From contig JAWMAR010000424.1 of NCBI GenBank assembly GCA_036785375.1, forward strand, positions 558,001 to 622,000: a stretch of DNA of 64,000 nucleotides, in the 5' to 3' direction. This DNA is from Leucoraja ocellata (taxonomy: Eukaryota). The translations under genes and the position numbers were made by a program. Shown here in pieces: positions 965-43,386 of this stretch (the stretch's first letter is position 1; each line of letters begins with the position of its first letter). The notes beneath the pieces are model-generated. The model saw only the letters and a list, made by a program, of their open reading frames with translations. It did not search any database and was not told where the DNA came from.

Positions 965-1078
965 AACCTGTGGAATATTCGTCAACAGGGGCTATTCTTG
1001 GAGTTTTATTTGCTGGAATTATTCTATGCGCACTAATTGCCTTTGGACTCTATGTTTACTTCGTGAAATACAAACCAG
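965..1078 (+). CDS. Gene A: transmembrane exon (EPVEYSSTGAILGVLFAGIILCALIAFGLYVYFVKYKP)
   Basis: Read by hand; too short for the ORF track. Boundaries ccag|AACCTG ... AAACCAG|gtaatt, 114 nt, phase 1-1. Encodes a ~25-residue hydrophobic helix with acidic residues before it and KYK after it. Confidence 0.88.
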
Positions 1079-1106
1079 GTAATTTGACAAATGGAGAATG
1101 TTCCTC

Positions 1107-1336
1107 AATGCGTTCAGAGTAAAGGGGGCTGAATACTTTTGCACGCCACACTTTTCAGTTTTTTATTTGTAAAAAAATTTGAAAACCATGTATCATTTTC
1201 CTTCCACTTCCCAATTATGCGCCACTTTGTGTTGGTCTATCACATAAAATCCCAATAAAATACATTTACGTTTGTGGTTTTAACATGACAAAATGTGGAA
1301 AAGGTCAAGGGGTATGAATACTTTTGCAAGCCACTG
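1107..1336. mobile_element. Tc1/mariner terminal fragment (IR/DR end)
   Basis: Direct repeats GAATACTTTTGCA(C/A)GCCAC at about 1131 and 1316; ends CACTG followed by TA. Confidence 0.6.
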
Positions 1337-3119
1337 TATGTGAAGTGAAAAGGATTAGTTAAAACAAATGTAGGTCCCCTTGCAGTCAGAAACAGGTGAA
1401 TTGATCATGGGGAACAAGGACATGGCAGACCAATTGAATAACTACTTTGGTTCTGTCTTCATTAAGGAAGACATAAATAATCAGCCGGAAATAGCAGGGG
1501 ACCGGGGGTCAAATGAGATGGAGGAACTGTGAAATCTAGGTTAGCTGGGAAGTGGTGTTAGGTAAATTGAATGGATTAAAGGCCGATAAATCCCCATGGC
1601 CAGATAGGCTGCATCCCATAGTACTTAAGGAAGTAGCCCCAGAAATAGTGGATGCATTAGTGATAATTTTTCAAAACTCTTTAGATTCTGGAGTAGTTCC
1701 TGAGGATTGGAGGCTAATGTAACCCCCCCTTTTTAAAAAGGGAGGGAGAGAGAAAACGGGGAATTACAGACCAGTTAGTCTAACATCGGTAGTGGGGAAA
1801 CTGCTAGTCGGTTATTAAAGATGGGATAGCAGCACATTTGGAAAGTGGTGAAATCATTGGACAAAGTCAGCATGGATTTATGAAAGATAAATCATGTCTG
1901 ACGAATCTTATTGAATGGATAAGGGAGAATCAGTGGATGTGTTATATCTGGACTTTCAGAAGGCTTTCGACAAGGTCCCACATAAGAGATTAGTATACAA
2001 ACTTAAAGCACACGGAATTGATGTGGATAGAGAACTGGCTGGCAGACAGGAAGCAGAGTAGGAGTAAACGGGTCCTTTTCAGAATGGCAGGTAGTGACTA
2101 GTGGGGTACTGCAAGGCTCAGTGCTGGGACCCCAGCTATTTACAATATATATTAATGATTTGGATGAAGGAATTGAATGCAACATCTCCATGTTTGCGGA
2201 TGACACAAAGCTGGGGGGCAGTGTTAGGTGTGAGGAGGATGCTAGGAGGCTGCAAGTTGACTTGGATAGGCTGGGTGTGTGGGCAAATGCATGGCAGATG
2301 CAGTATAATGTGGATAAATGTGAGCTTATCCACTTTGCCGGCAAGAACAGGAAAGTACACTATTATCTGAATGGTGGCTGATTTGGAAAAGGGGAGATGC
2401 AACGAGACCTGGGTGTCATGGTACACCAGTCATTGAAGTAGGCATGCAGGTGCAGCAGCAGTGAAGAAAGCGAATCATATGTTAACATTCATAGCAAAAT
2501 GATTTGAGTATAGGAGCAGGGAGGTTCTACTGCAGTTGGACAGGGCCTTGGTGAGACCACACCTGGAGTATTGCGTACAGTTTTGGTCTCCTAATCTGAG
2601 CGAAGACATTCTTGCCATAGAGGGTGTACAGAGAAGGTTCACCAGACTGATTCCTGGGATGTCAGGACTTTCATATGAAGAAAGACTGGATGGACCCGGC
2701 TTGTACTCGCTAGAATTTAGAAGATTGAGGGGGATCTTATAGAAACTTACAAAATTCTTAAGGGGTTGGACAGGCAAGATGCAGGAAGATTGTTCCCGAT
2801 GTTGGGGAAGTCTAGAACAAGGGGTCACAGTTTAAGGATAAGGGGGAAATCTTTTAAGACCGAGAAGAGAAAAAACATTTTGCACACTGAGATTGGTGAA
2901 TCTCTGGAATTCTCTGCCACAGAAGGAAGTTGAGGCCAGTTCATTGGCTATATTTAAGAGGGAGTTAGATGTGGCCCTTGTGGCTATAGGTATCAGGGGG
3001 TATGGAGAGAAGGCAGGTACAGGATACCGAGTTGGATGATCAGTCATGATCATATTGAATGGCGGTGGAGGCTCGAAGGGCCGAATGGCCTACTCCTGCA
3101 CCTATTTTCCATGTTTCTA
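1337..3119 (+). mobile_element. CR1 LINE, 5'-truncated and degenerate
   Basis: RT motifs [35 protein letters not shown]; frameshifted. Confidence 0.9.
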
Positions 3120-3169
3120 CGTCAGGATTGAACTCGGGTGTCTGGTGGTGTGAAGTAGCAGTTTTGGCG

Positions 3170-5680
3170 CCAACTCTCAGACACCTCCTCCTACTTATCC
3201 CTGGACCATGAACCCACCTACAAGCACTAGGCCACTATCTCTAGCACCATCACTGACTTCATAACTCCCTGTCCCTGCCACCCCCACGAGCCTCTAACCT
3301 CATTCTTCCCCGGCTCGGCACGGCCCGATTTTACCTTCTCCCCAAAATCCACAAGCCTGACTGTCCTGGTAGACCCATTGTCTCTGCCAGTTGGTGCCCT
3401 ACCAAACTTATTTCCACATACCTCGACTCCATCCTATCCCTCCCCCCCCCCCGGTTAATTCCCTCCCTACCTATGTTCAAGACAGCTCAGGCACTCTCCG
3501 TCGTCTCCACGCATTCCTTTCTCTAGGCCCTCACCCCCTCATCTTCACCATGGACGTCCAGTCACTCTACACCTCCATCCCCCACCAGGATGGTCTCAAA
3601 GCCGTTTCTTCCTCGACCGGAGAACCAACCAATCCCCGTCCACTGATACTCTCCTCCGCCTAGCGGAGCTGGTCCTTACCCTTAATAACTTTTCGTTTGA
3701 CACCTCTAATTTACTCCAAATACAAGGCGTAGCTATGGGCACGCGCATGGGCCCAGCTATGCCTGCCTCTTTGTAGGGTACGTCGAACAATCCTTGTCGA
3801 GACGTATCATGGCCCCATCTCCGACCTCTACCTCCGCTACATCGACGATTGCGTTGGTACTACCTCCTGCACCCACATGTAACTTCATCAACTTTGCCAC
3901 TAACTTCCATCCGGCACTTATGTACACCTGGACATTTACCGACACTCCCTACCATTTCTTGACCTCGTTTTCTCCGTCGCAGGTGATAGACTTTTGACTT
4001 ACATGCATTATAAACCCACTGACTCCCATGGCTATCTAGACTACACTTCTTCCCACCCAGCGTCCTGTAAGGACTCCAGCCCCCCAACTCCCACAATTCC
4101 TCCGTCTACACCGCATCTGCTCCCAGGATGAGGTGTTCCACACCAGGGCATCGGAAATTCTTCAGGGAACGGGGATTCCCCTTTTCTACTATAGTTGAGG
4201 CTCTCACGAGGGTCCTCTCCAATACCCCGCAACACTGCTCTCACTCCCCATCCCCCCCACTCGTAACAAGGCAGAGTGCCCCTAGTCCTCACCTTTCACC
4301 CCACCAGCCGTCACATACAACAAATAGTCCTCCGTCAGTTTTGCCACCTCCAACGTGACCCCACCACTCACCACATCTTCCCATCTTCCCACTCGTCTGC
4401 TTTCATAGAAATTAGGTGCAGGAGTAGGCCATTCGGCCCTTCGAGCCTGCACCGCCATTCAATATGATCATGGCTGATCATCCAACTCAGTATCCCATAC
4501 CTGCCTTCTCTCCATACCCTCTGATCCCCTTAGCCACAAGGGCCACATCTAACTCCCCTCTTAAATATAGCCAATTAACTGGCCTCGACTACCCTCTGTG
4601 GCAGAGAGTTCCAGAGATTCACCACTCTCTGTGTGAAAAAAGCTCTTCTCATCTCGGTTTTAAAGGATTTACCCCGTATCCTTAAGCTGTGACCCCTTGT
4701 CCTGGACTTCCCAACATCAGGAGCAATCTTCCTGCATCTAGCCTGTCCAACCCCTTAAGAATTTTGTTCGTTTCTATAAGATCCCCTCTCAATCTCCTAA
4801 ATTCTAGAGAGTATAAACCAAGTCTATCCAGTCTTTGTTCATAAGACAGTCCTGACATACCAGGAATCAGTCTGGTGAACCTTCTCTGTACTCCCTCTAT
4901 GGCAATAATGTCCTTCCTCAGATTTGGAGACCAAAACTGTACGCAATACTCCAGATGTGGTCTCACCAAGACCCTGTACAACTGCAAAGACCACTCCCTC
5001 CGTAACTTACTGGTCAATTCTTCCCTTCCCTCCCGTACCACCCCCTCCCCGGGCACTTTCCCTTGCAACCGCAGGAAATGTTACACGTGTCGCGTCACCT
5101 CCCCCCTCGACTCCAATCAAGGACCCAAGCAGTCTTTCCAGGTGCGACAGAGGTTTACCTGCATCTCCTCCAACCTCATCTATTGCATCCGCTGCTCTAG
5201 ATGTCAGCTGATCTACGTCGGTGAGACCAAGCGTAGGCTTGGTGATCGTTTCGCCGAACCCTCCGCTCGGTTCGCATCAACCAACCTGATCTCGCGGTGG
5301 CTCAGCACTTCAACTCCCCCTCCCATTCCAAATCTGACCTTTCTGTCCTGGGCCTCCTCCATGGCCAGAGGGTGCACCACTGGAAATTGGAGGAGCAGCA
5401 CCTCATATTCCGCTTGGGCAGTCTGCATCCTAATGGCATGAACATTGAATTCTCCAATTTCCGGGAGCCCTTGCTTTCTTCTTCCCTTCTCAGCTCTCCC
5501 TCAGCCCTCGGGCTCCTCCTCTTCCTTTCTTCTTCCCGCCCCCCCCCCCCCCCCCCCCATCCTGCATCAATCTGAAGAAGGGTTTCGGCCCAAAACCTTT
5601 CCTTTTTCCTTTGCTCCACAAATGCTGCCTCACCCGCTGAGTTCCTCCAGCACTTTTGTCTACCAAGGAACTGCAGATGC
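3170..5680 (+). mobile_element. Penelope-like element (RT plus GIY-YIG endonuclease), degenerate, with a CR1 3' fragment inserted at about 4404-4988 (-)
   Basis: TMDVQSLYTSIP, GVAMGTRMGP, YIDD and FTCISSNLIYCIRCSRCQLIYVGETKRRLGDRF (GIY-YIG) motifs. Confidence 0.85.
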
Positions 5681-5854
5681 TGGTTTACACTGAAGATAGA
5701 CACAAAATGCTTGAGCTACTTAGGGGGTCAGGCAGCATCTCTGGAGAAAAGGAATAGGCGACGTTTTAGGTCAGAGACCCTTCTTCAGACCTTTGTATCT
5801 TCAGAAAGTACATTTAGATTGCCAAGTTCTAATTACCTGCTTTGTTTTGACTAG

Positions 5855-6298
5855 TTCCTCCAAAGATCACTGGATCCAATGGACATCAAACCATGCAACA
5901 TCTTGAAAAAGAAATGGCCACTTGGTGGGTTTGTCCATTCCGACCTCGTGAAAATATAATTCGCTTATACCTAAGGAGGAAGGGGGAAATATATGACATG
6001 AGAAATACTATTTTAGATTGGGACAGCAGAAAATCTACTGAAAACAGAAATGGAAAGATCAACGGAGAGGGTCACAATGAAGCGAGCATTCTTATGAATT
6101 CAAATTATGTCAATGCATCTTTTACACCATTGGAACCCAAATATGACACTGATGCAGATGGGTTTTCCAGTGTGATGATCAATGTGGAAATATATCCAGA
6201 TGTTAACCAGGATGCAGGGGCTGAATTAACCATTGAAGTTCAACATAAATCACTGAAACAGCCGATATCAAACACTTTGATACTGGATGTTAAAGGAG
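5855..6298 (+). CDS. Gene A: post-TM Ig C1-like domain 1 (both canonical Cys lost; long internal insertion)
   Basis: ctag|TTCCTCCAAAG ... GGAG|gtaaag, 444 nt, phase 1-1, in frame with ORF 5893-6309. Motifs VPPKI, TWWVCPFRP (vs CxVxGFxP), DGFSSV, LTIEVQHKSLKQPI (vs YxCxVxHxSLxxP). Confidence 0.85.
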
Positions 6299-9776: not shown

Positions 9777-10154
9777 TGCCACCCAAGGTTTCAAACATCT
9801 TCAAACCCTCCTGCATCATTCACAATGAATCTACATCTTTGATCTGTTCAATCACTGGGTTTAAACCGAGACCTTTACGTATCACGTGGCAACGAAAGAG
9901 AAAGAACATGGAGGCAGAAGAAATAGTTCGAATGGAGGAGGACAACAGGACAACTATTCACGGTGGTGACGGGGAGATGTCCACATATAAACATTACATC
10001 AGTGAGATGAAGCATGATGATGAATCCTACAGCATCACTAGTGTACTAGAGATAGTGCCTGATATACAGCAAGATCAACACTCGCTTTACACCTGTAAAG
10101 TACATCACAGCGGCACCAGTGACCAGGAGAGAGAAATCAAGTTAATGATTGCAG
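9777..10154 (+). CDS. Gene A: Ig C1-set domain 2 (both Cys present)
   Basis: tcaaag|TGCCACCC ... GCAG|gtatat, 378 nt, phase 1-1. Motifs LICSITGFKP, ITW, YSITSVL, YTCKVHH. Confidence 0.9.
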
Positions 10155-11069: not shown

Positions 11070-11378
11070 TCATTCCAAAAGTGGAATTAAAGTGCCACAC
11101 AGACAAGATACTTGATGGTGTACCCATGACGATAAGCTGTCAAATAAATGCGTTTTACCCCAAAGACATCACAGTGAAATGGCTGAAAAACGATGAAGAG
11201 ATGTTGCAGAATTTCAAAGTTGCTGAGCCAGTAATTGGTCAGGACGGTCTCTATCATGTGGCAAGTGATGTGGAGATAGTCCCCACCAGGGCTGAGTCAA
11301 CAGCCAAATATACATGCCGAGTGTCCCATTCGAGCCTCACTGAGCCATTACACATTGAATGGGTTGCAGGTGAAATAG
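11070..11378 (+). CDS. Gene A: Ig C1-set domain 3 (both Cys present)
   Basis: tttcag|TCATTCCA ... ATAG|gtaggt, 309 nt, phase 1-1; an alternative in-phase donor lies at 11369. Motifs ISCQINAFYPKDITVKW, DGLYHVAS, YTCRVSHSSL. Confidence 0.92.
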
Positions 11379-15244: not shown

Positions 15245-15577
15245 TTTCATTGCCAGAGCTTACAGCAATTGAGGTCGATCCACTTTGCCCCGAAATGGGA
15301 AAGGAAGTAACACTCTCCTGCAAAGCTTACGGATTCTATCCTGAAGCAAATGAGATATTCTGGTTCAAAGACTTTGAGAAAGTGAAAGATCCATTCAAAG
15401 TAGGAATTACTCTGGGACCAAATGAACTGGACACAGAGAATGGTTGCTATTCACGTTTATCCAAGTGGAAATTCACACCAGCTGCTGTTGACCATGGAAA
15501 AGAATTTAAGATGAAAGTCCTTCATTCTACAACTTCAGGCAACCCCAACGCTTCCAGTTACACTTTAAAATTAAAAG
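15245..15577 (+). CDS. Gene A: Ig C1-like domain 4 (F-strand Cys replaced by Met)
   Basis: ctccag|TTTCATTG ... AAAAG|gtgaat, 333 nt, phase 1-1. Motifs VTLSCKAYGFYP, IFW, ENGCYSRLS, FKMKVLH. Confidence 0.9.
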
Positions 15578-16504: not shown

Positions 16505-16816
16505 GGATTCCAATCGTCGACGACATTAAGTATGAGCCACTAGTGGCTGCGTCTGGTTCGCAACATCGTCTCGTCTGCAAAGTTGATAACTTTTATCCAA
16601 AACAAATCAGAACAAGCTGGCTACGTAAAGGGAAACCAATATCCCATGGAGTCGAAGATGCAGTTATGAATGAGGATGAGAATGGATGTTTTCAGATGTG
16701 GTCCTCTTTGCGTATTAATCCAACTGATCTACAATTTGATGAAAAGATTTCCTTTCAAGTGAAGCATTCAAGGTTAAATACTCCAATAACAAAACAACTG
16801 TCTTTAAAACTTCCAG
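16505..16816 (+). CDS. Gene A: Ig C1-like domain 5 (F-strand Cys replaced by Phe)
   Basis: caacag|GGATTCCA ... TTCCAG|gtatgt, 312 nt, phase 1-1. Motifs LVCKVDNFYPKQIRTSW, ENGCFQMWSSL, ISFQVKHSRL. Confidence 0.9.
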
Positions 16817-22986: not shown

Positions 22987-23031
22987 ATTATGGCAAAAAC
23001 GAAACTGATGTCAATGAAAAAGTCGATGAAG
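22987..23031 (+). CDS. Gene A: micro-exon copy 2 (DYGKNETDVNEKVDE)
   Basis: ctgcag|...|gtaaaa; 45 nt, phase 1-1. Confidence 0.72.
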
Positions 23032-26885: not shown

Positions 26886-27629
26886 AAAGCATTCAGACAT
26901 TACGTAGTTAAGTAAAGAAACTGATGCTTTAAATGAAAGAAAAGTTTTTTAAAAAGTTACCCCTCCCAACCTTGGGGGGGAAACTAAGGGACAGAACTTA
27001 AAATGGTACGTGCAAACACCCCCAGTCCGGTTATGGGTTTGTTATAAAACCGGTGGACCGTTATTTCATTCGTCCATCCTGCAGCCACTAGGATGTCGTC
27101 AAGGGGCACGTCCATAGATCTTGCTGCTGACGTAGATGCAGCCCTGGTGGAGTGAGATTTAACCATATAAATGTTTACTCCTGCTACCGCCATTACCTCT
27201 TTTGACCATCTGGAGATGGTTTGAGTTAACACCTTTTGGTGTGGTTTTTTTATGGCTGATGAGGACCGATTGTTCTGAGCCTCCGTAACTCTCAGATAGC
27301 GGTGTTAGTATGTTACCACCCACACAACCGTTGGTCCTCTGGATATGCCAAGAACTGGATCTCCATCCCTGGCATTCCTGGCCTGCTCTGTTTATCAGGT
27401 TCCTGATTAGGAATGTTATGTTGTTCATATTGGTGGTCATGTAGTCCAACCGTAGCTTTTGCAATGTCTGGACTCTGTCAGCATACCACCTTCAGGGTTA
27501 GTTATAGGCGCTCCCCACTGTCAAAGTAGGATTTGTACCATGCTCACATCCCATGTGTCAGTGTACCTTGGCCTTGGAGGTCTTAAATTGTAAATTCCCT
27601 TCATGAATTTTGTTGTAAAGGGGTGCGTT

Positions 27630-28097
27630 CCATATAACAATTACAGCACGGAAACAGGCCATCTCGACCCTTCTAGTCCGTGCCGAACACATAATCTCCC
27701 CTAGTCCCATATACCTGCGCTCAGACCATAACCCTCCATTCCCTTCCCATCCATATAACTATCCAATTTATTTTTAAATGATAAAAACGAACCTGCCTCC
27801 ACCACCTTCACTGGAAGCTCATTCCACACAGCTACCACTCTGAGTAAAGAAGTTCCCCCTCATGTTACCCCTAAACTTCAGTCCCTTAATTCTCAAGTCA
27901 TGTCCCCTTGTTTGAATCTTCCCTACTCTCAGTGGGAAAAGCTTTTCCACGTCAACTCTGTCTATCCCTCTCATCATTTTAAAAACCTCTATCAAGTCCC
28001 CCCTTAACCTTCTGCGCTCCAAAGAATAAAGCCCTAACTTGTTCAACCTTTCTCTGTAACTTAGTTGCTGAAACCCAGGCAACATTCTAGTAAATCT
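27630..28097 (-). mobile_element. CR1 3' fragment nested in DIRS (same subfamily as 23527-25570)
   Basis: Near-identical to the 3' end of the 664-aa ORF (PGFQQLSYRERLNKLGLYSLERRRLRGD). Confidence 0.9.
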
Positions 28098-31000
28098 ATC
28101 GAACTGTGCCCTGCTTCCGGCATCAGATAGGAGGAGAGTGCGCCTCTGGCACAATAGATGCACTATAACTTAGTTTATAGTTATAGTACAGTTAATAGGA
28201 ACTGCAAGACATCCGTTATCCGAACTGTGTTGTATTTGTTCGGACAGTCCTATGCCTTGAAATGGCCTCTTCAGAATCTGCAGACTAACAAGTTATACGT
28301 TCATGTAGTGGATGATTGCTCCCTGTAACTGGGTTCACTAGGAGGTCCCTGCTCTTGGGTACAGCCATTACTGGCTGGACTATAATTCCCAACATTTTTG
28401 GGGACCAGGCTTGAGTAGGCCAATCTGGCACTACCAATATGCCTGTGGCTTAGTCTTGCTTGATTTTTGTCAAGCATCGGTTTGTGAGACAAATTGGCGG
28501 AAAGTATACATAAACATTCCTCCCCAATTGAGGGAGAAAGCATCCACTGCCTTGCTCCTGGATCCAGCTCGCAGGACACATATCTGGGTAACTAATGGGT
28601 AGTCTAGAAGCAAATGGATCAACATCTGGTATGCCAAATCGTGTATTTATTTTGTTAAATACTGCCTGATTCAACATCCATTCTGTGTTGTTATTAAACA
28701 TTCGGGATCCAGCATCTGTCACCGTGTTATATCTACCTCGTAGATTTCCCAAATATTCCTCTCGATACACCAGTGCCAAATGAGGTTCGACAATCTGTCA
28801 TAAGATACAGATTTTACACCACCCTTGTTAATGGATATATGCCACCGCAGTGGTGTTATCAATCTGAATTTGAACAAGCACCGGTTGTATATTGCTACAG
28901 AAACCCTTGAGTCCATATTGTGCCCCCAACAATTCTGGGTAATTGATTCCATATGTTGGGGAATTACAGACTCCTGCTCATTCCATCTGCCCCCACAGCT
29001 CTAGACTGTGTTGGTGGCTCCCCTTAGCCGCTGGCATAGGTCTGAAGAACCCTCAATGGCTTTCAAGCAAAATTTCCCTGAGCTGTCTCCCATTCGTTAT
29101 CCACCATAGTTATCCAACAATGGCCTCTGCTGACAATCCAGTTTTGCCAATTCAGCCTGCATGTAATCTGAGTGTTCGTTCCTTTGCTTGCTGTAAGTTC
29201 TGGTAATGCAAAGGCCCGTACTGCTGGGAATGCAGCTACTATTTCCCAATTACACTCGCTGTTTGCCTGATAGATGGCTAGTATTTGACTATCAGGTCAT
29301 TGCAGGCTGAATTAATATTGTTGTTTGCCCCTAGGCAAAGTCACCAACATATTTACTGTTTTTGATAGTAAATTCTAGGTAATCAATTACCCTTGTAGGT
29401 GTCAATTTTGATTTAACTGGATGAATGAGGTAACCAATTCTTTCAAACAGGGTTTTGGTTTGCTTGACTGATGCTTCTGCCAATTCTTGGTGACTCCAAA
29501 ATGGAAATGTCCTCCAAATATGCCATTACCATGTGGTTTTGAGACCTTTGTAGTCCCAGAATTGGTTTCCGTAGTTTAGTCAATAGTCTAGGAGCTGATG
29601 AAAACCCATTTGGCAGAGCCATGCCATCCAGTTAAACTTCAAATATCTCCTGTTCTTAATGAATAGACACCGAATAGTATGCATCTTTGAGGTCGATGCA
29701 TGCCATGTGACCATTTTATAGGAAGCTCCTATAAAACAGTAGTTAGACCGTAACAAAAAATTGCTGTTTCTAAAAGTCTGTACTGCACAAATGAGTTAAA
29801 CCTGGATGAAATGACATCCTCCATCTGTCACCTGTCCTGGAAGGCAATCCTGCCCAAAATACTGGGCCTGCCTTGAAGACAATTCCAGTCCGAGTTCTAA
29901 GCCTGCTTGGAACCTATGTATGTTGTGCAGTAAAAAATAATCACATGTTGTTATCTGTTTTTTAAAACCAGATCTGAAATTCATGTTATTATCATTTTGA
30001 ACAAAAACACAAGAGTAAATTACCAACATGTAACTGGTCCATAATCCCTTGTTTCGGTAAACCCAGATCCACCTACCTCCATGGCTACCGGTGGTCTTGT
30101 GGTAAGCCCAAAGGCCCCTGATGCGGGTTCCTTTTCTCTCCTTGATTGGGAGTAGGTCTGGTAGGGAGTGTGGATTCCATGTTTCTCCTGACCTCTGCTT
30201 GGGTCTTGGTCTGAAAACCTTATCATACTGAGCCTGCCTTGTCGGACAATTCTGGCCATAATTCTGAGTCTGCCTTGAAAGACGACTGATCATATTTCCG
30301 TGCCCAGCTTTCAAGCTACCACCGGCTTCAGTGAACTGCTTACCCCCTATGGAGGTGTGGGGTGTGTTGTCGCCTACTGACGAAGTTTTGCTTGTCGTTG
30401 GTACCTTGATTGGTCCGACAGCTTTTGCTTCCTTCTTCTGGTCTTACCTGAAGATAGGATTCGACGGCTGGTTTCTCCAAAGTCACCCTGATAGCGCTGT
30501 TCCCTTGCCGGCATTTGTGCGGATATTCTGCCAACTGCTGTCTCTTGAGGCCATATGCATGTGCTTCAGTATGTTCATACTTTAATTCGAGATCAGTTAC
30601 CTACTGATCTCGAAGCCAAATTTCGTTTGAACGTTATGTGAGGTTCAAATGACAAATGAATGGTATTGTATAGTATTGTAATTCAAGATCAGTTACCTAC
30701 TGATCACTCACACTCCTCTCCATTGAGAGTGAGATTTGTAGGTAGCCCTGAAAACAGGGGCTGCCGCAGGCCCCTGAGGATACCTGCGCTGACATGGCCC
30801 CTCCAGCGGGCCTAAATGAGATTCTTGCTTTGGGTCAGACTGAAACTGACAGTGAATGCTCCTCTCCTCAGAGCAGGAGACATTTTCTAGATCTCTATCC
30901 AGGGAAGCACCCAGTGGAACCTGGGTGATTGCAGAAGTATTTCTTTTCTTTTGTGCTTATTATTTATTTTATGTAAAGCTTTTTGGTGCAAGTTAACTTA

Positions 31001-32712
31001 AACAGTGCTATATAAGTAAAAGTTACTTCCTTTCTTCTGCTTGTCCCTGGGAAGGTCCCCCCCCCTGCTTTTGTACTCTGCTTCAGAGTGGTTTCTTCCA
31101 TATGTACTTCCCCCTCCAATGGGGAAGACATTGGGTTGCCCCATTATGCGAGGCTCCCGGTACTGCCTGCTGCTGTAGGCCCCGGGCTGACACCGCTCTC
31201 TCCTTAGAGCAGATCATTGTTGGAGCAACTTCTCCAAAAGTTGCTCCTATGTGGGAGAGTCGTCCTCAGACACTCTCCGTTGAGGGAGGGTATCCCTTTC
31301 CATCCCCGGACTCTTCTGAGTCAACGGGTTGTTTGACTTGCGGGTGGATTTTCCCATACTGCAGGACCCCCAACGGAGCTCTCCTCCTGCAACAAGTCTC
31401 CTGCCGGCTCAGCTGCCGGCGCTGTGTCGGGAAACAGTTATGGTCTGAACGCAGGTGTATGGGACTAGGGGAGAATACGTGTTCTGCACGGACTGGAGGT
31501 GTCGAGATGGCCTGTTTCCGTGCTGTAGTTGTTATATGGTTATATGGTTAAACACCGTCGCCCGCTACTGGGAAATGCTGCGGTCTTCGGCAGCCGACTT
31601 CCCCGCGGACCGTATCCTCGACATCTGGGCCCTGAAACTACAAAAAGTTTCAAGCCCGAAAGAACGAGGTAAGTGTTTCAACTTTCCTTACCTGCCCATC
31701 CTAACGGCCTGGGAGAATGCAGTGCTTCTCCAGTCCATCGCACGTTGCGTTCAGACGTAATGACGCGCACGCAGACGGACGGCCCTTGTTCACGTATTCA
31801 CGTAAAATTAAAGGTAGACAAAAATGCTGGAGAAACTCAGTGGGTGGGGCAGCATCTATGGAGCAAAGGAATAGGCGACGTTTCGGGTCGAGACCCTTCT
31901 TTAGACTGATGTGGGCGGGGCGGTGTGGCGTGGAAAAAAAGGAAGATGTGGAGACAGTAGGCAGTGGAAGAGCTGGAAGGGGAGGGGAAGGAGGGTGAAT
32001 TCAAGGACTACCTGAACTTGGAGAAGTCAATGTTCATACCGCTGGGGTGTAAACTACCCAAGTAAAATATGAGGTGCTGTTCCTCCAATTTGCTCTGGAC
32101 ATGGAGGTGGCCCAGGACTGAAAAGTCGGATTCGGAATGGGAGGGGGAGTTGATGTGCTGAGCCACCGGGAGATCAGGTTGGTTATTGCGAACTGTGTGG
32201 AGGTGTTGGTGAAGCGATCGACAAGCCTGCGTTTGGTCTCACCGATATAGAGTAGTTGACACCTGGAAAAGCGGATGCAATAGATGAGGTTGGAGGAGGT
32301 GCAGGTGAACCTCTGCCTCAGCTGGAAAAACTGCTTGGGTCCTTGGATGGAGTCGAGGGGGGAGGTAAAGCGACAAGGGAAAGTACCAGAGGAAGGGGGC
32401 GATTTGGGTAGGAAGGGACGAATTGACCAGGGAATTGGTTCAGACAGTCCTTGCTTTCGCCCTCCTTCCGCTCCCCTTCATAGCTGTCCCACAGCCTACT
32501 CTCACTGCCTCTTCCTTTCTTTTTCCCGCCCCAGCCCCCCACATCAATGTGAAGAAGGGTCTCGACACAAAACGTTCCCTATTTCCTTCGCTCCATAGAT
32601 GCTGCCTCACCCGCTGAGTTACTCCAGCATTTTTGTCTACCTTCGTTTTTTCCAGCATCTGCAGTTCCTTCTTAAACATCAGGTTTAATTAAGCTCTTTT
32701 TTTATTCTGCAG

Positions 32713-32757
32713 ATTATGGCAAAAAAGAAAATGATGTCAATGAAAAAGTCGATGAAG
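32713..32757 (+). CDS. Gene A: micro-exon copy 3 (DYGKKENDVNEKVDE)
   Basis: ctgcag|...|gtaaaa; 45 nt, phase 1-1. Confidence 0.72.
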
Positions 32758-34402
32758 GTAAAAGTCTTGATTTCCAATAGTTACTGTATTTTGAATGTTT
32801 GCTTCAAATAGAAATTTAGATCATTACACATGATCCAAATGTTTTCAAAACACAAAGTGCTGGAGGAACTCGGTGGCTCAGGCTGAATCTGGAAGGAATG
32901 TTTAGTTTAGAGATAGAGCTCATAAACAGACCCGTCGGCCAACCGAGTCCGCACCGACCAACGATCACCACACACTAACAATATCCAATACTCGAGGGAC
33001 AATTTATAACTTTTACCGATGCCAGTTAACCTCCAAATCTGCACGTGTTTAGAGTGGGGGAGGTATCCGGAGAAACCCCACGTGGTCATGGGGAATGTCC
33101 AAACTCCACACAGACAGCACCTGTGGTCAGGATGGAGCCCGGGTCTCTGGTGCTGTGAGGCAGCAACTCTACCGCTGCGCCGCCCGTTATCTCTTCAAAC
33201 TTTACACCAGATTTATTTAATTATTTCTTTCACAACAACTTTTCATGTTGAATATTTGTTACTGATGTTGACAATAGATGATTTTGGATGTTCAGTTGTT
33301 TCAAATCTGTTTGGGTGTCATAGATCACGGGAAAAGGCCCATCGGCCCAACTTGCCCTTGTCAACCAAGGTGCCCCATCTAAACTAGTCCCACCTGCCCA
33401 CTATTGGCCCATATCCCTCTGAACCTATCCTATCCATGTTCCTGCCCAAGTGTTTAATACTCTGACTTTGTAAGTGGCAATTTGATTTGACTAATGTCAG
33501 GTATAATTAAAGGGAGACAAAATTGCTGGAGAAACTCAGTGGGTGAGGCAGGATCTATGGAGCAAAGGAATAGGCGACGTTTCGGGTCGAGACCCTTCTA
33601 TAGACTGATGTGGGCGGGGCGGTGTGGCGGGGAAAAAAAGGAAGATGTGGAGACAGTAGGCAGTGGAAGAGCTGGAAGGGGAGGGGAAGGAGGGTGAAAG
33701 CAAGGACTACCTGAAATTGGAGAAGTCAATGTTCATACCGCTGGGGTGTAAACTACCCAAGTAAAATATGAGGTGCTGTTCCTATAATTTGCTCTGGACA
33801 TGGAGGAGGCCCATGACAGAAAAGTCGGATTCGGAATGGGAGGGGGAGTTCAAGTGCTGAGCCACCGGGAGATCAGGTTGGTTATTGCGAACTGTGTGGA
33901 GGTGTTGGGCGAAGCGATCGACAAGCCTGCGCTTGGTCTCACCGATATAGAGTAGTTGACACCTGGAACAGCGGATGCAATAGATGAGGTTGGAGGAGGT
34001 GCAGGTGAACCTCTGCCTCAGCTGGAAAGATGCTTGGGTCCTTGGATGGAGTCGAGGGGGGAGGTAAAGTGACAAGGAAAAGTACCAGAGGAAGGGGGCG
34101 ATTTGGGTAGGAAGGGACGAATTGAACAGGGAATTGGTTCAGACAGTGCTTGCTTTCGCCCTCCTTCCCCTCCCATTCATTGCTGTCCCACAGCCTACTC
34201 TCACTGCCTCTTCCTTTCTTTTTCCCGCCCCACATCAATGTGAAGAAGGGTCTCGACCCAAAACGTTCCCTATTTCCTTCGCTCCATAGATGCTGCCTCA
34301 CCCGCTGAGTTTCTCCATCATTTTTATCAACCTTTAATTTTTCCAGCATCTGCAGTTCCTTCTTAAACATCAGGTTTAATTAAGCTCTTTTTTATTCTGC
34401 AG

Positions 34403-34447
34403 ATTATGGCAAAAAAGAAATTGATGTCAATGAAAAAGTCGATGAAG
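34403..34447 (+). CDS. Gene A: micro-exon copy 4 (DYGKKEIDVNEKVDE)
   Basis: ctgcag|...|gtaaaa; 45 nt, phase 1-1. Confidence 0.72.
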
Positions 34448-35739
34448 GTAAAAGTCTTCATTTCCAATAGTTACTGTATTTTGAATGTTTGCTTCAAGTA
34501 GAAATTTAGATCATTACACATGATCCAAATGTTTTCAAAACACAAAGTGCTGGAGGAACTCGGTGGCTCAGGATGAATCTGGAAGGAATGTTTAGTTTAG
34601 AGATAGAGCTCATAAACAGGCCCGTCGGCAAACCGAGTCCGCACCGACCAACGATCACCACACACTAACAATATCCAATACTCTAGGGACAATTTATAAT
34701 TTTTACCGGTGCCAATTAACCTCCAAATCTGCACGTGTTTAGAGTGGGGGAAGTATCCGGAGAAACCCCACGTGGTCATGGGGAATGTCCAAACTCCACA
34801 CAGACAGCACTAATTAAAGGGAGACAAAAATGCTGGAGAAACTTAGGGGGTGAGGCAGCATCTATGGAGCAAAGGAATAGGCGACGTTTCGGGTCGAGAC
34901 CCTTCTTTAGACTGATGTGGGCGGGAGGTGTGGCGGGGAAAAAAGGAAGATGTGGAGACAGTAGGCAGTGGAAGAGCTGGAAGGGGAGGGGAAGGAGGGT
35001 GAAAGCAAGGATTACCTGAAATTGGAGAAGTCAATGTTCATACCGCTGGGGTGTAAACTACCCAAGTAAAATATGAGGTGCTGTTCCTATAATTTGCTCT
35101 GGACATGGAGGAGGCCCAGGACAGAAAAGTCGGATTCGGAATGGGAGGGGGAGTTGATGTGCTGAGCCACCGGGAGATCAGGTTGGTTATTGCGAACTGT
35201 GTGGAGGTGTTGGGCGAAGCGATCGACAAGCCTGCGCTTGGTCTCACCGATATAGAGTAGTTGACACCTGGAACAGCGGATGCAATAGATGAGGTTGGAG
35301 GAGGTGTAGGTGAACCTCTGCCTCAGCTGGAATCACTGCTTGGGTCCTTGGATGGAGTTGAGGGGGGAGGTAAAGCGACATGTGTAGCGTTTCCTGCGGT
35401 TGCAAGGGAAAGTACCAGAGGAAGGGGGTGATTTGGGTAGGGAGGGACAAATTGAACAGGGAATGGATCCAGGTAGTCCTTGCTTTCACCCTCCTTCCGC
35501 TCCTCTTCACAGCTGCCCCACAGCCTACTCTCTCCGCCTCTTCCTTCCTTTTTCCCGCCCCAACCCCCCACATCAATGTGAAGAAGGGTCTCGACCCAAA
35601 ACGTTCCCTATTCCTTCGTTCCATAGATGCTGCCTCACCCGCTGAGTTTCTCCATCATTTTTATCTACCTTTGTTTCGTCCAGCATCTGCAGTTCCTTCT
35701 TGAACATCAAGTTTAATTAAGCTCTTTTTTATTGTGCAG

Positions 35740-35784
35740 ATTATGGCAAAAAAAGAAATGATGTCAATGAAGACGCCGATGAAG
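35740..35784 (+). CDS. Gene A: micro-exon copy 5 (DYGKKRNDVNEDADE)
   Basis: gtgcag|...|gtaaaa; 45 nt, phase 1-1. Confidence 0.72.
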
Positions 35785-37447
35785 GTAAAAGTCTTGATTT
35801 CCAATAGTTACTGTATTTTGAATGTTTGCTTCAAGTAGAAATTTAGATCATTACACATGATCCAAATGTTTTCAAAACACAAAGTGCTGGAGGAACTCGG
35901 TGGCTCAGGCTGAATCTGGAAGGAATGTTTAGTTTAGAGACAGAGCTCATAAACAGGCCCGTCGGCCAACCGAGTCCGCACCGACCAACGATCACCACAC
36001 ACTAACAATATCCAATACTCTAGGGACAATTTATAACTTTTACCGATGCCAGTTAACCTCCAAATCTGCACGTGTTTAGAGTGGGGGAGGTATCCGGAGA
36101 AACCCCACGTGGGCATGGGGAATGTCCAAACTCCACACAGACAGCACCTGTGGTCAGGATGGAGCCCGGGTCTCTGGTGCTGTGAGGCAGCAACTCTACC
36201 GCTGCGCCACTGTGCCGCCCGTGATCTCTTCAAACTTTACACTAGATTTATTTGATTATTTCTTTCACAACAAAGTTTCATGTTGAATAAAGTAGTTATA
36301 TTTGTTACTGATGTTGACAATAGATGATTTTGGATGTTCAGTTGTTTCAAATCTGCTTGGGTGTCATAGATCACGAGAAAAGGCCCTTCGGCCCAACTTG
36401 CCCTTGTCAACCAAGGTGCCCCATCTAAACTAGTCCCACCTGCCCACGATTGGCCCATATCCCTCTGAACCTATCCTATCCATGTTCCTGCCCAAGTGTT
36501 TAATACTCTGACTTTGTAAGTGGCAATTTGATTTGACTAATGTCAGGTATAATTAAAGGGAGACAAAAATGCTGGAGAAACTCAGTGGGTGAGGCAGCAA
36601 CTATGGAGCAAAGGAATAGGCGACGTTTCGGGTTGAGACCCTTCTTTAGACTGATGTGGGCGGGAGGTGTGGCGGGAAAAAAAGGAAGATGTGGGGACAG
36701 TAGGCAGTGGAAGAGCTGAAAGGGGAGGGGAAGGAGGGTTAAAGCAGGGACTACCTGAAATTGGAGAAGTCAATGTTCATACCGCTGGGGTGTAAACTAC
36801 CCAAGTAAAATATGAGGTGCTGTTCCTCCAATTCGCTCTGGACATGGAGGTGGCCCAGGACAGAAAGGTCGGATTCGGAATGGGAGGGGGAGTTCAAGTG
36901 CTGAGCCACCGGGAGATCAGGTTGGTTATTGCGAACTGTGTGGAGGTGTTGGGCGAAGCGATCGACAAGCCTGCGCTTGGTCTCACCGATATAGAGCAGT
37001 TGACACCTGGAACAGCGGATGCAATAGATGAGGTTGGAGGAGGTGCAGGTGAACCTCTGCCTCAGCTGGAATGACTGCTTGGGTCCTTGGATGGAGTTGA
37101 GCGGGGAGGTAAAGCGACAAGGGAAAGTACCAGAGGAAGGGGGCGATTTGGGTAGGAAGGGACGAATTGAACAGGGAATTGGTTCAGACAGTCCTTGCTT
37201 TCGCCCTCCTTCCCCTCCCCTTCACTGCTGTCCCACAGCCTACTCTCACTGCCTCTTCCTTTCTTTTTCCCGCCCCACATCAATGTGAAGAAGGGTCTCG
37301 ACCCAAAACGTTCCCTATTTCCTTCGCTCCATAGATGCTGCCTCACCCGCTGAGTTTCTCCATCATTTTTATCTACCTTTGTTTTGTCCAGCATCTGCAG
37401 TTCCTTCTTAAACATCAGGTTTAATTAAGCTCTTTTTTATTCTGCAG

Positions 37448-37492
37448 ATTATGGCAAAAAAGAAAATGATGTCAATGAAAAAGTCGACGAAG
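37448..37492 (+). CDS. Gene A: micro-exon copy 6 (DYGKKENDVNEKVDE)
   Basis: ctgcag|...|gtaaaa; 45 nt, phase 1-1. Confidence 0.72.
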
Positions 37493-38297
37493 GTAAAAAT
37501 CTTCATTTCCAATAGTTACTGTATTTTGAATGTTTGCTTCAAATAGAAATTTAGATCATTACACATGATCCAAATGTTTTCAAAACACAAAGTGCTGGAG
37601 GAACTCGGTGGCTCAGGATGAATCTGGAAGGAATGTTTAGTTTAGAGACAGAGCTCATGAACAGGCCCGTCGGCCAACCGAGTCCGCACCGACCAACGAT
37701 CACCACACACTAACAATATCCAATACTCTAGGGACAATTTATAACTTTTACCGATGCCAATTAACCTCCAAATCTGCACGTGTTTAGAGTGGGGGAGGTA
37801 TCCGGAGAAACCCCACGTGCTCATGGGGAATGTCCAAACTCCACACAGACAGCACCTGTGGTCAGGATGGAGCCCGGGTCTCTGGTGCTGTGAGGCAGCA
37901 ACTCTACCGCTGCGCCACTGTGCCGCCCGTGATCTCATCAAACTTTACACTAGATTTATTTGATTATTTCTTTCACAACAAAGTTTCATGTTGAATAATG
38001 TAGTTATATTTGTTACTGATGTTGACAATAGATGAGTTTGGATGTTCAGTTGTTTCAAATCTGCTTGGGTGAGACACTTAGTCATAGAGTCATAGTTCAC
38101 GGGAAAAGGCCCTTTGGCGCAACTTGCCCTTGTCAACCAAGGTGCCCCATCTAAACTAGTCCCACCTGCCCGATTGGCCCATATCCCCCTAAATCTATCC
38201 TATCCATGTTCCTGCCCAAGTGTTTAATACTCTGACTTTGTAAGTGCCAATTTGATTTGACTAATGTCAGGTTTAATTAAACTCTTTTATTCTTCAG

Positions 38298-38342
38298 ATA
38301 ATGGCAAAGCAAAAAATGATGTCAGTGAAGAAGTCAATAAAG
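38298..38342 (+). CDS. Gene A: micro-exon copy 7, most divergent (DNGKAKNDVSEEVNK)
   Basis: ttcttcag|ATAATGG...AATAAAG|gtaaaa; 45 nt, phase 1-1. Confidence 0.75.
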
Positions 38343-41942: not shown

Positions 41943-42089
41943 TGTAAGGTAGCAACTCTACCGCTGTGCCAGTGTTGTCCTGAAACTGCTATTTGAAGGA
42001 TTTTGATGAATCTTTTGAAGATTATATGTTATTCTATGTGCATGATTTTCCATATCCACCCAAATGCAACTATTTAGATGGTAAAAATC

Positions 42090-42750
42090 GGTTTAGGTTT
42101 ATTGTTGTCATGTGTACCAAGGTATAGTATTAAGCTTTATTTTGCCTGCTATCCAAACAGATAAAAAAAAACATACATATATACAATCAGTTGAAACAGA
42201 AATAAAACAGATAGAGTAAAGGGGAAGATACAGAGTGCAGGATATAGTTCTCAGCATTGTGGCGCATCAGTTACAGAGACAAAGTCCAATGTCCATGATA
42301 GGGTAGAGGTGAATCCTAGCTTATGGAAGGACTGTTCAGAAACCTGATAACAGAGGGGAAGAAGCTGCTCCCGAGTCTGGTGGTGTGTCCTTTCAAGCTT
42401 CTGTACCTTCTCCATGACAGAAGCAGGGAGAGAAAGGAATTACCGGGGCGGGGCATGTCTTTGCTTATGTTGGCTTCTTTCCCGAGACAGTGTGAAGTGT
42501 GGATGGAGTTGATAGTCTGTGTGATGGACTGGGCCACATTTCCATCTCTCTGCAATATTGTGCGGTCTTGAGCAGAGCAGTTCCCAAAACAAGCTGTGAT
42601 GTAAACGATGAGTATGTTTTCTACAGTGCATCTGCAGAAGTCTGCAAGGTGACATACCGAATTTCCTCAGTCTCCTCAGGAAGTCGAGGTGTTGCTGTGC
42701 CTGCTAGACTGTAGCATCAATGTGGTTGGTCCACGACAGGTCATTGGTTA
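42090..42750 (-). mobile_element. Rex1/L2-type LINE 3' fragment
   Basis: RRYRSLKGHTTRLGSSFFPSVIRFLN C-terminal motif. Confidence 0.7.
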
Positions 42751-43084
42751 TATTAGCGACAATAGTCATTTACTTTAAACATTGGAATTGGTGAATCTTT
42801 GGAATTTATTGCCACAGACGGCTGTGGAGGCCGTCATTGGGTATTTTTAAAGCTTTGTAAGGGTATCAACAGGTTACGGGGAGAAGGCAGGAGAATGGGA
42901 TTGAGAGAGAAAAATAGATCAGCCATGATTGGATCTTGGAGTAGACTCAATGGGCTGAATGGCCTAATTCTGCTCCTGTGTGTTATGGTCTTATGTTTGG
43001 ATTAAAATAAGTTGATTATGTCTCAATAACCAATGACTGTCATTATGGGTTTCACATTATTTATTATAAATGATATTCCAACAG

Positions 43085-43386
43085 AAAAGTTGAAGGTGGT
43101 TTCAAAGATAACATGCCGTCCAGAGAAACCTAAGGCTGGGCACCCTGTAATGCTGTCCAGTGAAGTTCGAGACGCAAGTGCAGATCAAGCCCATATCATC
43201 TGGTACAAAGATACTTACCCTTTTGATGAACATCGGTATGTTACAAACACGCCATTTGAAAATGAATATGGTTTCACTACGACTTTAACTTACACACCAA
43301 AGGAAGCAGATGGCAATCATATCCAAGTTTTCATTGATGTTAACATGGAAGAACATGTGAGAGATTTCGCCTTGATATTAAGTTGA
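43085..43386 (+). CDS. Gene A: terminal exon, Ig-like domain lacking both canonical Cys, ends at TGA
   Basis: ccaacag|AAAAGTTG, phase 1, frame of ORF 43033-43386. Motifs PKAGHPVMLSSEV, HIIWYKD, FTTTLTYTP resemble domain 4 (PEMGKEVTLSC, IFWFKD, WKFTP). Confidence 0.82.

Follow-up and report, generated by a model that had tools for sequence, protein, structure and literature searches.

In a window of 64,000 nucleotides of the Leucoraja ocellata genome (assembly GCA_036785375.1, contig JAWMAR010000424.1; the window is the whole stretch analysed, and all coordinates are positions within it) there is a gene, here gene A, whose mRNA splices a transmembrane (TM) exon directly onto a run of immunoglobulin (Ig) exons. 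Gene A probably encodes a type I B7-H6-like protein in which the TM segment is followed by an Ig chain lying in the cytoplasm, the location of the chain being a topology prediction.

Organisation of gene A

A sequence-only reading of the window had proposed fourteen phase-1 exons joined by GT-AG introns, with the TM exon ahead of the Ig exons. Using a script we reproduced the AG acceptors and GT donors, the lengths and the open phase-1 frames, and all 14 exons, checked one by one, lie at the positions below, each open and bounded by phase 1. The features of gene A, together with the V exon of the next gene in tandem, are as follows.

965..1078, + strand: connecting-peptide/TM exon, 114 nt, phase 1-1; hydrophobic core of 23 residues between ..PVEYSSTG and KYKP
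1079..5854, + strand: GT-AG intron between the TM exon and Ig1; retroelement fragments throughout, RT-like ORFs; absent from X2 record 9 and X6 record 24
5855..6298, + strand: Ig1 (post-TM domain 1), 444 nt; Ig-like sandwich, interrupted by a long insertion modelled at low confidence
9777..10154, + strand: Ig2 (post-TM domain 2), 378 nt; C1-set, carries the canonical Cys-Trp-Cys and an insertion of acidic character
11070..11378, + strand: Ig3 (post-TM domain 3), 309 nt; canonical C1-set
12372-12575 and 12610-12811, no strand: two assembly gaps (N runs) within the Ig3/Ig4 intron, unfilled
15245..15577, + strand: Ig4 (post-TM domain 4), 333 nt; C1-set, Met replaces the F-strand Cys
16505..16816, + strand: Ig5 (post-TM domain 5), 312 nt; C1-set, Phe replaces the F-strand Cys
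19715..20032, + strand: decayed Ig exon; homology to domain 6 of relatives in sharks and rays; one in-frame stop
21949..38342, + strand: seven 45-nt acidic micro-exons; polypyrimidine tract plus AG, and a GTAAAA donor, in 7/7
43085..43386, + strand: terminal exon, 302 nt, stop at its end; Ig-like domain
58430..58807, + strand: V-set exon of gene B; Pfam V-set E 1.3e-9

Since every exon of gene A is open with phase 1 at both ends, the frame remains open for any combination of exons, and the length of the TM exon, a multiple of three, makes its skipping frame-neutral. Frame continuity is also independent of the N gaps. Ig3 and Ig4 correspond to adjacent residues in the closest gene model, P0152 (q790-903 and q898-1008), and this contiguity means that no exon of P0152 is hidden in the gaps. 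Ig1 is 88% identical to P0152 residues 522-667, and the per-exon identity of gene A to the Amblyraja model is 80-94%.

The micro-exons begin at 21949, 22987, 32713, 34403, 35740, 37448 and 38298, with retroelement-rich spacers between them; none was found on the minus strand. There are seven of these units in the window, compared with three or four in the Amblyraja isoforms. The decayed exon at 19715-20032 matches residues 891-992 of P0159 by tblastn (41% identity over 104 aa, E 7.5e-17), and neither an open AG..GT phase-1 exon at this position nor a counterpart in the Amblyraja models was found, the stop being visible in the translation.

Splicing of the TM exon to Ig1

The junction data are contigs, not reads, of public runs whose RNA status is a guess; the RNA-like runs contain 0.19-0.34 of the words sampled from 9700-11400, a region with an exon share of 0.40. 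In run X2, a 993-nt contig (record 9) aligns with letters 28-141 on 963-1076 and 142-587 on 5853-6298, and in run X6 a 1720-nt contig (record 24) aligns with letters 754-863 on 963-1072 and 864-1307 on 5849-6298. The TM exon is thus joined directly to Ig1, from 1078 to 5855, in contigs of two runs from two studies, and the 4.8-kb GT-AG intron has been removed. Splicing of the TM exon to some other terminal exon, which the sequence-only reading had considered, is contradicted by these joins, and it follows from them that the Ig exons do not form a separate gene.

The TM exon occurs in spliced contigs of X2, X3 and X6. In X6 record 24 it is preceded by 753 letters, which is room for a leader, V and C1; this contig differs from the window on Ig1 by 27 letters and 6 gaps, and because of these mismatches it may derive from a paralogue. 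Record 8 of run X1 has, from Ig1 onward, exactly 378 letters more, which is the length of Ig2. Retention of the intron past 1078 would, on reading the sequence, yield a short tail with a stop after 15 codons; no contig piece crossing 1078 into the intron is among the pieces listed, with 17,634 further pieces unlisted.

Domains encoded after the TM exon

A chain of about six C1-type domains had been proposed from the sequence, and for four domains the assignment holds. Against a Pfam C1-set (PF07654) gathering cut-off of 21 bits, the scores are 49.8 bits for Ig2 (E 4.5e-13), 65.5 for Ig3 (E 5.8e-18), 33.7 for Ig4 (E 4.8e-8) and 51.7 for Ig5 (E 1.2e-13). Neither Ig1 nor the terminal exon has a Pfam match, so C1-set membership is limited to four of the six domains, and the other two are Ig-like on the basis of AlphaFold and Foldseek. 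Ig1 is predicted with a mean pLDDT of 84.7 (residues 69-83 fall below 50) and its top Foldseek matches are exclusively Ig folds. For the terminal exon the pLDDT is 94.4 and the top matches are titin M4, CH1/C-lambda, HLA-DM and beta-2-microglobulin, with telokin also among the matches. As modelled, both are Ig-like sandwiches.

The best PDB sequence matches of Ig3 are Ig constant domains, the MHC class I alpha-3 domain and UrIg2 (9dmx, E 9.3e-21). Pfam searches of the window exons and of four full-length homologues return Ig-superfamily families only, with no SPRY/PRY. The Ig1 exon alone as a query found no homologue among proteins of 81-257 aa, a search that is uninformative because the relatives, at 650-1270 aa, are far longer than the proteins covered.

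Homologues and conservation of the layout

The layout of signal peptide, V, C1, TM, collinear Ig chain, acidic linker and terminal Ig domain is found in 26 representative models from 22 species, spanning Callorhinchus, sharks, rays, Latimeria, Protopterus, Polypterus/Erpetoichthys, a caecilian, newts, frogs and Alligator. The order C1, TM, domains 1 to 5 and so on to the last is collinear in all 26. More broadly, 61 of the 68 family proteins (among 200 fetched) have a TM between C1 and domain 1. The V and C1 exons of gene A itself lie upstream of the window, and its ectodomain type is taken from the full-length homologues (P0152 and 25 others), which have an N-terminal signal peptide, then V and C1, and then the TM. 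P0152 carries a duplicated V-C1.

The guess from the sequence that gene A is B7-H6-like is borne out by the names of homologues with the same layout: NCBI calls the Alligator, Bombina and Rhinophrynus models 'natural cytotoxicity triggering receptor 3 ligand 1' (NCR3LG1), most relatives being "uncharacterized". NCBI also predicts isoforms that skip the TM exon in Hemitrygon (P0155), Bombina (P0019) and Microcaecilia (P0161), the TM exon being the sole difference from the sister isoforms (38 residues in the ray, 34 in the frog and 37 in the caecilian). A partial Scyliorhinus model, P0031, is likewise without a TM.

Membrane topology

The TM exon has a best 19-residue Kyte-Doolittle mean of 2.82 and no other exon of gene A exceeds 0.76, which confirms the earlier statement that there is no second hydrophobic segment. 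None of the 26 models has a second hydrophobic segment or a C-terminal TM between C1 and the C-terminus; the post-TM maximum is at most 1.74, and both values of 1.74 fall inside domain 2 of two polypterid models. The flanks are EPVE and KYK as reported from the sequence, and the charge asymmetry extends to the 26 models, with K+R of 69 against D+E of 19 on the C side of the TM and 41 against 57 on the N side. All 26 representative genes have retained both the TM exon and the positive flank, and gene A and its homologues share a single TM helix with a predicted type I orientation. A type II anchor, also considered in the sequence-only reading, is unlikely, since the homologues have a signal peptide, V and C1 before the TM and a positive flank after it.

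N-glycosylation sequons are enriched before the TM in the 26 models (65 observed, 49.2 expected). After it they occur as expected by chance (110 observed, 114.3 expected), at half the density. Across the ~260 columns before the TM, one sequon column is common to at least 50% of the sequences, and across the ~815 columns after it no sequon column is common to even 30%. Isoelectric point does not separate the two sides (medians of 5.7 and 6.3).

Loss of canonical cysteines

In the window, the canonical cysteine pair is intact only in Ig2 and Ig3. The F-strand Cys is missing from Ig1, Ig4, Ig5 and the terminal exon, and the B-strand Cys is also missing from Ig1 and the terminal exon; the core Trp is retained in Ig2-Ig5 and in the terminal exon. 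Among the homologues, domain 1 has an F-strand Cys in at most 3 of 26, and the Cys, Trp and Cys of domain 2 are present in 26, 26 and 25 of 26, as are those of domain 3. Domain 4 retains the B-strand Cys in 24/26 and the Trp in 26/26, and has no column at the F-strand position with Cys in at least 15% of sequences. Domain 5 has the B-strand Cys in 20/23, the Trp in 23/23 and the F-strand Cys in 9/23, and the terminal domain has the Trp in 17/17 and both Cys in 8/17. The canonical disulfide is therefore gone from four of the six post-TM positions, and the cysteines of the V and ectodomain C1 domains are at least 90% conserved.

Two other cysteine measures were tried and rejected. Cysteine parity, as a signal of free thiols, gives 68 even and 76 odd counts among 144 post-TM domain copies, and the ectodomain control is also mostly odd (16/26). 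Covariation of extra cysteines tracks the frog clade and is inseparable from shared ancestry.

From the single TM with its positive C-side flank, the lack of conserved sequons after the TM and the disulfide loss at four of six positions, we infer that the post-TM Ig chain is cytoplasmic, in line with topology rules and with the homologues. The type I protein with an intracellular Ig scaffold that had been proposed earlier is thus supported as a prediction of topology.

Alternative explanations

An alternative that we consider unlikely, while giving it real weight, is that the relevant product is a TM-skipped, secreted protein in which V, C1 and six to nine further Ig domains are all extracellular, the TM-containing mRNA being minor or regulatory and its tail functionless. 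The predicted skipped isoforms of ray, frog and caecilian and the frame-neutral 114 nt of the TM exon would suit such a product, as would domains 2 and 3, whose canonical pairs are kept in 25-26 of 26 models as expected of disulfide-bonded extracellular domains. The lone B-strand Cys of domain 4 is, however, equally conserved without a partner, so that conservation alone does not prove a disulfide. The TM is present in 61 of 68 family models and isoforms and its exon in both spliced contigs spanning the junction, and its conservation with a positive flank in 26/26 genes, the contrast of no conserved sequon in ~815 columns with one in ~260, and the four lost disulfides all speak against this reading. 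Given the skipped isoforms, the Ig chain may also, or mainly, be active outside the cell.

It is improbable that this copy of gene A is a decaying member of an expanded cluster, transcribed but non-functional. One ancestral Ig exon is indeed dead (19715-20032, with its in-frame stop), the introns are swollen by retroelements, and the number of micro-exons is unstable (seven, against 3-4 in the Amblyraja isoforms), but in 14 of 14 exons the frame is open and the splice sites are intact, each exon is 80-94% identical to the Amblyraja model, and the junction is present in transcript-like contigs.

We give very little credence to an artefact of gene modelling, in which the TM exon would end an upstream V-C1-TM gene and the Ig exons would belong to a separate one. 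Any set of phase-1 exons reads open, so the open frame proves nothing in this respect, and tandem B7-H6-like genes do exist, gene B being one; but the TM-to-Ig1 junction occurs in contigs of two runs from two studies, no post-TM exon has a signal-peptide-like hydrophobic stretch, and models from 22 species have the identical order. A topology like that of IGSF1, with precedent in its Ig loops flanking a hydrophobic linker, is highly improbable. In it an internal signal would return the chain to the lumen, whether or not cleavage followed, and the Ig domains before and after the hydrophobic segment would all be luminal or extracellular; but 26/26 models have one hydrophobic segment and no C-terminal TM, and post-TM values in the window are at most 0.76.

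Comparison with other Ig-superfamily proteins

In butyrophilin genes a run of very short cytoplasmic exons precedes a folded beta-sandwich domain. Like gene A, the butyrophilins (BTN/BTNL) combine a B7-related V-C ectodomain, one TM, short cytoplasmic exons and a folded beta-sandwich, which by analogy suggests a common design in which a B7-type ectodomain is backed by a folded module inside the cell. Gene A differs in having no B30.2/PRY-SPRY domain and in placing its 45-nt micro-exons after, not before, most of the folded domains.

IGSF1 resembles gene A in that an internal hydrophobic segment is flanked by encoded Ig domains. In IGSF1, every Ig loop ends up luminal or extracellular because a second hydrophobic stretch acts as an internal signal and a TM lies at the C-terminus, whereas gene A has one hydrophobic segment and no C-terminal TM. 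Mature IGSF1 is described as a single-TM protein with a short tail and seven Ig loops outside the cell (PMC6552037).

UrIg2 of sharks has a VJ domain, nine C1 domains and a TM, with the TM and cytoplasmic part after the extracellular chain (PMC12227049). It shares with gene A a long C1-type chain and some acidic stretches, and is a shark gene that does not rearrange (PMC12227049). In gene A, by contrast, the TM is ahead of the chain and the family has a B7-like V; the UrIg/UrIg2 arrangement of a VJ-type V, a C1 chain and a C-terminal TM was not found in gene A.

The Ig domains of titin, telokin and myosin light-chain kinase are of the I-set, in soluble muscle proteins, and are disulfide-free in the reducing cytosol; gene A differs from these in having four C1-set domains and a chain tethered to a membrane receptor. 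C1-set domains are counted among the defining extracellular elements of adaptive immunity (Ig, TCR, MHC, B7), and to our knowledge C1-type domains are otherwise known only as disulfide-bonded domains in the lumen or outside the cell. The literature covered, including parts of PMC12227049, PMC10751288, PMC6514059 and PMC6552037, yielded no account of B7-H6-like proteins with Ig domains following the TM, a coverage that does not establish absence from print.

A model for gene A

In the type I reading that we favour, the main product would have a signal peptide, V and C1 outside the cell (encoded upstream of the window) and one stop-transfer helix. Some 800 residues would then be cytoplasmic: first the five Ig-like domains, of which four are C1-set, then a flexible acidic linker encoded by as many as seven of the 45-nt micro-exons, and last the terminal Ig-like domain. 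By analogy with mammalian B7-H6, the ectodomain might be read by NKp30-type receptors, and the cytoplasmic Ig rod could be a rigid docking or sensing scaffold at the position taken in butyrophilins by B30.2. If the frame-neutral TM exon were skipped, as in the isoforms predicted for three other species, the product would be a secreted, all-Ig protein.

A wider reading, which we find possible but somewhat short of probable, is that C1-set domains have also been in use inside the cell for more than 400 million years. As a tethered multi-domain rod they would have followed the ectodomain of the ancestral B7-H6, persisting from chimaeras to crocodilians but being replaced in mammals, and would allow a stress or 'induced-self' ligand to sense or signal cytosolic events (inside-out, in parallel to the butyrophilin B30.2), with an exon-skipping switch that releases a secreted chain.

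If the chain is cytosolic, it contradicts the textbook view of C1-set domains as disulfide-bonded and confined to the lumen or the cell exterior, and the ancestral B7-H6 would have had an intracellular business end that was lost in mammals, which would reframe the origin and original sensing role of this NK-cell ligand. These would also be natural antibody-type constant domains that fold without disulfides, of relevance to intrabody design. Even if the secreted protein is the relevant product, a conserved switch by exon skipping would yield either a membrane-bound B7-H6 or a secreted protein of about nine Ig domains, a feature undescribed in a clinically studied ligand family.

Gene B and the relationship to B7-H6

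Mammalian B7-H6, like the homologues described here, is of type I, has a single TM and carries V and C1-type domains in its ectodomain. Its cytoplasmic tail is ~190 residues long, non-Ig, and carries signalling motifs, whereas the tail of gene A consists of six Ig-like domains and an acidic linker. Gene A is best placed, as a putative long form, in the NCR3LG1/B7-H6 branch of the B7 family, within a tandem cluster. The best PDB sequence matches of the gene B V exon are CD276 (B7-H3; 6e-14 over two stretches) and NCR3LG1 (B7-H6; 5.6e-10), B7-H3 slightly outscoring B7-H6. The gene B V exon is 43-45% identical to the V domains of P0152 and, judged by these matches, shows the type of ectodomain predicted for the family.

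Exon structure of gene A

The window is vertebrate DNA with many retroelement fragments. All of the exons previously listed for gene A, a B7-H6-like gene, were reproduced by script as open exons with AG acceptor, GT donor and phase 1 at both ends.

Exons of gene A and runs of N in the window.
965–1078, + strand: TM exon, 114 nt (AG/GT, phase 1-1, open)
5855–6298, + strand: Ig1 exon (AG/GT, phase 1-1, open)
9777–10154, + strand: Ig2 exon, 378 letters (AG/GT, phase 1-1, open)
11070–11378, + strand: Ig3 exon (AG/GT, phase 1-1, open)
15245–15577, + strand: Ig4 exon (AG/GT, phase 1-1, open)
16505–16816, + strand: Ig5 exon (AG/GT, phase 1-1, open)
Starts at 21949, 22987, 32713, 34403, 35740, 37448 and 38298, + strand: seven 45-nt micro-exons (polypyrimidine tract with AG; GTAAAA donor)
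43085–43386, + strand: terminal exon (open, stop at its end)
12372–12575 and 12610–12811: N runs within the Ig3/Ig4 intron
48623–48822 and 48833–48960: N runs between gene A and gene B, a second B7-H6-like gene in tandem with it

Because every exon is open and in phase 1-1, any subset of them keeps an open frame, and the open frame of gene A alone is therefore no proof that the exons are joined; they were searched and folded singly rather than concatenated. The closest gene model spans Ig3 (q790–903) and Ig4 (q898–1008) with adjacent residues, so the gaps between these exons hide no exon of that model, and the reading frame of gene A is independent of them.

The micro-exon array (21949–38342, +) consists of seven near-identical acidic units, but only three or four are used in the isoforms of Amblyraja; this suggests recent duplication of the unit with variable exon use. 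No micro-exon copies are present on the opposite strand of the window. The spacers are laden with retroelements and include a reverse-transcriptase-like ORF of 664 aa (23495–25489). A 254-aa ORF, integrase-like by eye and presumably of a retroelement, lies in the intron after Ig5 (18117–18881, −), adjacent to a dead Ig exon described below. In the last intron, 40503–40999 is a tandem repeat with a 23-nt unit in 21.5 copies, for which a 68-nt period also scored.

Splicing of the TM exon to Ig1

The sequence-only reading had joined the TM exon to Ig1 rather than to a different terminal exon, and this join is present directly in contigs from two runs belonging to two studies. The public runs X1–X9 are small sets of contigs, not reads, and their 'RNA?' label is a guess; they contain 0.19–0.34 of the sampled words of 9700–11400, a stretch with an exon share of 0.40. 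Four of the runs were aligned on 900–6400, and a small part of the pieces is listed. In record 9 of X2 (993 nt), letters 28–141 correspond to 963–1076 with 0 differences and letters 142–587 to 5853–6298 with three. In record 24 of X6 (1720 nt), letters 754–863 correspond to 963–1072 and 864–1307 to 5849–6298, with 27 differences and 6 gaps, given which it is possibly a paralogue; the 753 letters upstream of its TM exon leave room for a leader, V and C1. The two-letter offset relative to 1078 and 5855 arises because AG closes both the exon and the intron. These joins show that a 4.8-kb GT-AG intron is removed and the TM exon fused directly to Ig1. The stretch by which record 8 of X1 extends beyond Ig1 is 378 letters, exactly as long as Ig2. 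The TM–Ig1 junction is not among the 15 joints listed in the joint table, beside which 60 further joints exist.

Some contigs end precisely at exon borders: 1078 is the last position of X3 record 16, and two others, X1 record 7 and X2 record 9, begin at 5853. Because graph assemblers break contigs in this way where the graph branches, these junctions may be alternatively spliced or vary between paralogues. Read-through of the TM exon donor (1079–1126, +) adds 15 codons and then a stop. Were the intron left unspliced, or the transcript alternatively polyadenylated, the product would be a membrane form with a conventional short tail; this read-through is in none of the contigs listed.

Immunoglobulin domains after the TM segment

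About six C1-type domains had been proposed after the TM segment; the number holds for Ig-like domains, only four of which are C1-set by Pfam. Ig2, Ig3, Ig4 and Ig5 match this family with E-values of 4.5e-13, 5.8e-18, 4.8e-8 and 1.2e-13, all over the 21-bit cut-off, and among PDB sequences Ig3 matches Ig constant domains, the MHC class I alpha-3 domain and shark UrIg2. The TM exon, Ig1 and the terminal exon gave no Pfam match. Ig1 and the terminal exon were aligned with full-length homologues (alignments A1, 21 rows, and A2, 18 rows) and then folded. The Ig1 model has a mean pLDDT of 84.7, residues 69–83 forming an insertion of low confidence, and Foldseek places only domains of the Ig superfamily among its best matches; the terminal exon model (pLDDT 94.4) matches titin M4, CH1/C-lambda, HLA-DM and beta-2-microglobulin. 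The Pfam matches and the two folds together give the six.

A seventh Ig exon is dead (19715–20032, +). Its homologue in shark and ray relatives is domain 6 (41% identity over 104 aa, E 7.5e-17), but one in-frame stop interrupts it, and no open exon that could be used was found. Its counterpart is missing from the Amblyraja models too, and this domain of the ancestral chain seems to have been dropped in the skate lineage.

Relatives and conserved layout

A HMMER scan with Ig3 returned 1751 proteins at E ≤0.001, 69 of them at E ≤1e-30. The best match, P0001, is Amblyraja radiata LOC116984368, labelled 'uncharacterized', to which the window exons are 80–94% identical per exon. It has a signal peptide, a V-C1 pair twice, the same TM segment and Ig1–Ig5, and it ends with three of the micro-exon units and the terminal domain seen in the window. 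The same order is found in cartilaginous fishes (Hemitrygon, Narcine, Cetorhinus, Heterodontus, Pristiophorus, Scyliorhinus, Callorhinchus), lobe-finned and basal ray-finned fishes (Latimeria, Protopterus, Polypterus, Erpetoichthys), amphibians (Microcaecilia, Lissotriton, Pleurodeles, Bombina, Pseudophryne, Leptodactylus, Rhinophrynus, Leptobrachium, and Xenopus tropicalis with models P0069/P0190) and, among reptiles, Alligator. The Callorhinchus set contains UniProt V9K7L7, an entry derived from the cDNA project on the elephant shark. The post-TM domains of 26 representative models line up one by one in the same order, and in the four of these proteins searched Pfam reports Ig-superfamily families only. 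The layout is conserved across jawed vertebrates, within the lineages sampled.

The proteins of this family are already public, but are unnamed or named from the ectodomain only; the name 'natural cytotoxicity triggering receptor 3 ligand 1' is carried by the models from Alligator, Bombina and Rhinophrynus. In the part of the full-text literature covered, no account was found of Ig domains following the TM segment of B7-H6-like proteins. The V-set exon of gene B (58430–58807, +) matches solved B7-H3 and B7-H6 ectodomains. Long ORFs just upstream of it (56159–57597) are a Thr/His/Ser-rich simple repeat and were rejected as a gene.

Membrane side of the Ig chain

With the exon structure, the TM-to-Ig1 splice and the Ig nature of the domains established, we infer from the sequences that the product of gene A would be a type I protein with a cytoplasmic tail of Ig domains about 800 residues long. 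The homologues begin with signal peptides. As first read from the sequence, no second hydrophobic segment follows the TM segment: each of the 26 models has one strong segment, and the highest KD19 (Kyte-Doolittle mean over 19 residues) after it is 1.74, within domain 2 of two polypterid models, and at most 0.76 in the window's own post-TM exons. The positive flank likewise recurs on the C-terminal side, the 15 residues after the TM segment totalling 69 K+R and 19 D+E versus 41 and 57 in those before it (26 models).

N-glycosylation sequons in the same models number 65 in the ectodomains, versus 49.2 expected from shuffling (1.05 per 100 aa), and 110 after the TM segment, versus 114.3 expected (0.56 per 100 aa). 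In the window itself, sequons are present in Ig1, Ig2, Ig4 and one of the micro-exons. In the full-length alignments one pre-TM sequon column is common to at least half of the sequences, and no post-TM column, among ∼815 occupied, is common to even 30%. V and the ecto-C1 domain conserve the canonical cysteine pair at 90% or more, and four post-TM positions have lost it.

Canonical cysteines at the four post-TM positions (models with Cys/models).
Domain 1: B-strand 18/26; F-strand at most 3/26
Domain 4: B-strand 24/26; no F-strand column reaching 15%
Domain 5: B-strand 20/23; F-strand 9/23
Terminal domain: both in 8/17

Domains 2 and 3 retain Cys-Trp-Cys in 26/26/25 of 26, which counts against a cytosolic chain; the Cys of domain 4, which has no partner, is equally conserved, so conservation of cysteine alone is no proof of a disulfide. 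By analogy with the butyrophilins, in which a B30.2 domain stands behind a related ectodomain in the place that the Ig tail has in gene A, the tail might speculatively act as a docking or sensing rod.

Predicted TM-skipped isoforms

The main rival to a cytosolic chain is that its real workplace is the extracellular space, reached via an isoform that skips the TM exon. The TM segment is present in 61 of the 68 family members among 200 fetched proteins. Of the seven that lack it, P0064 and P0191 are N-terminal truncations and P0097 is unclear, and in four (Hemitrygon isoform X6, Bombina X2, Microcaecilia X3 and a partial Scyliorhinus model) C1 is joined directly to domain 1; in the first three, the TM exon is the sole difference from their sister isoforms. 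Skipping the window's 114-nt TM exon keeps the frame, and together with these isoforms this makes a secreted all-Ig form plausible at the level of predicted transcripts; such a form may be conserved.

Two predicted Alligator isoform X2 models (P0182/P0183) start without the signal-peptide exon, in contrast to P0184/P0181; if real, these would leave the whole protein in the cytosol or change its insertion.
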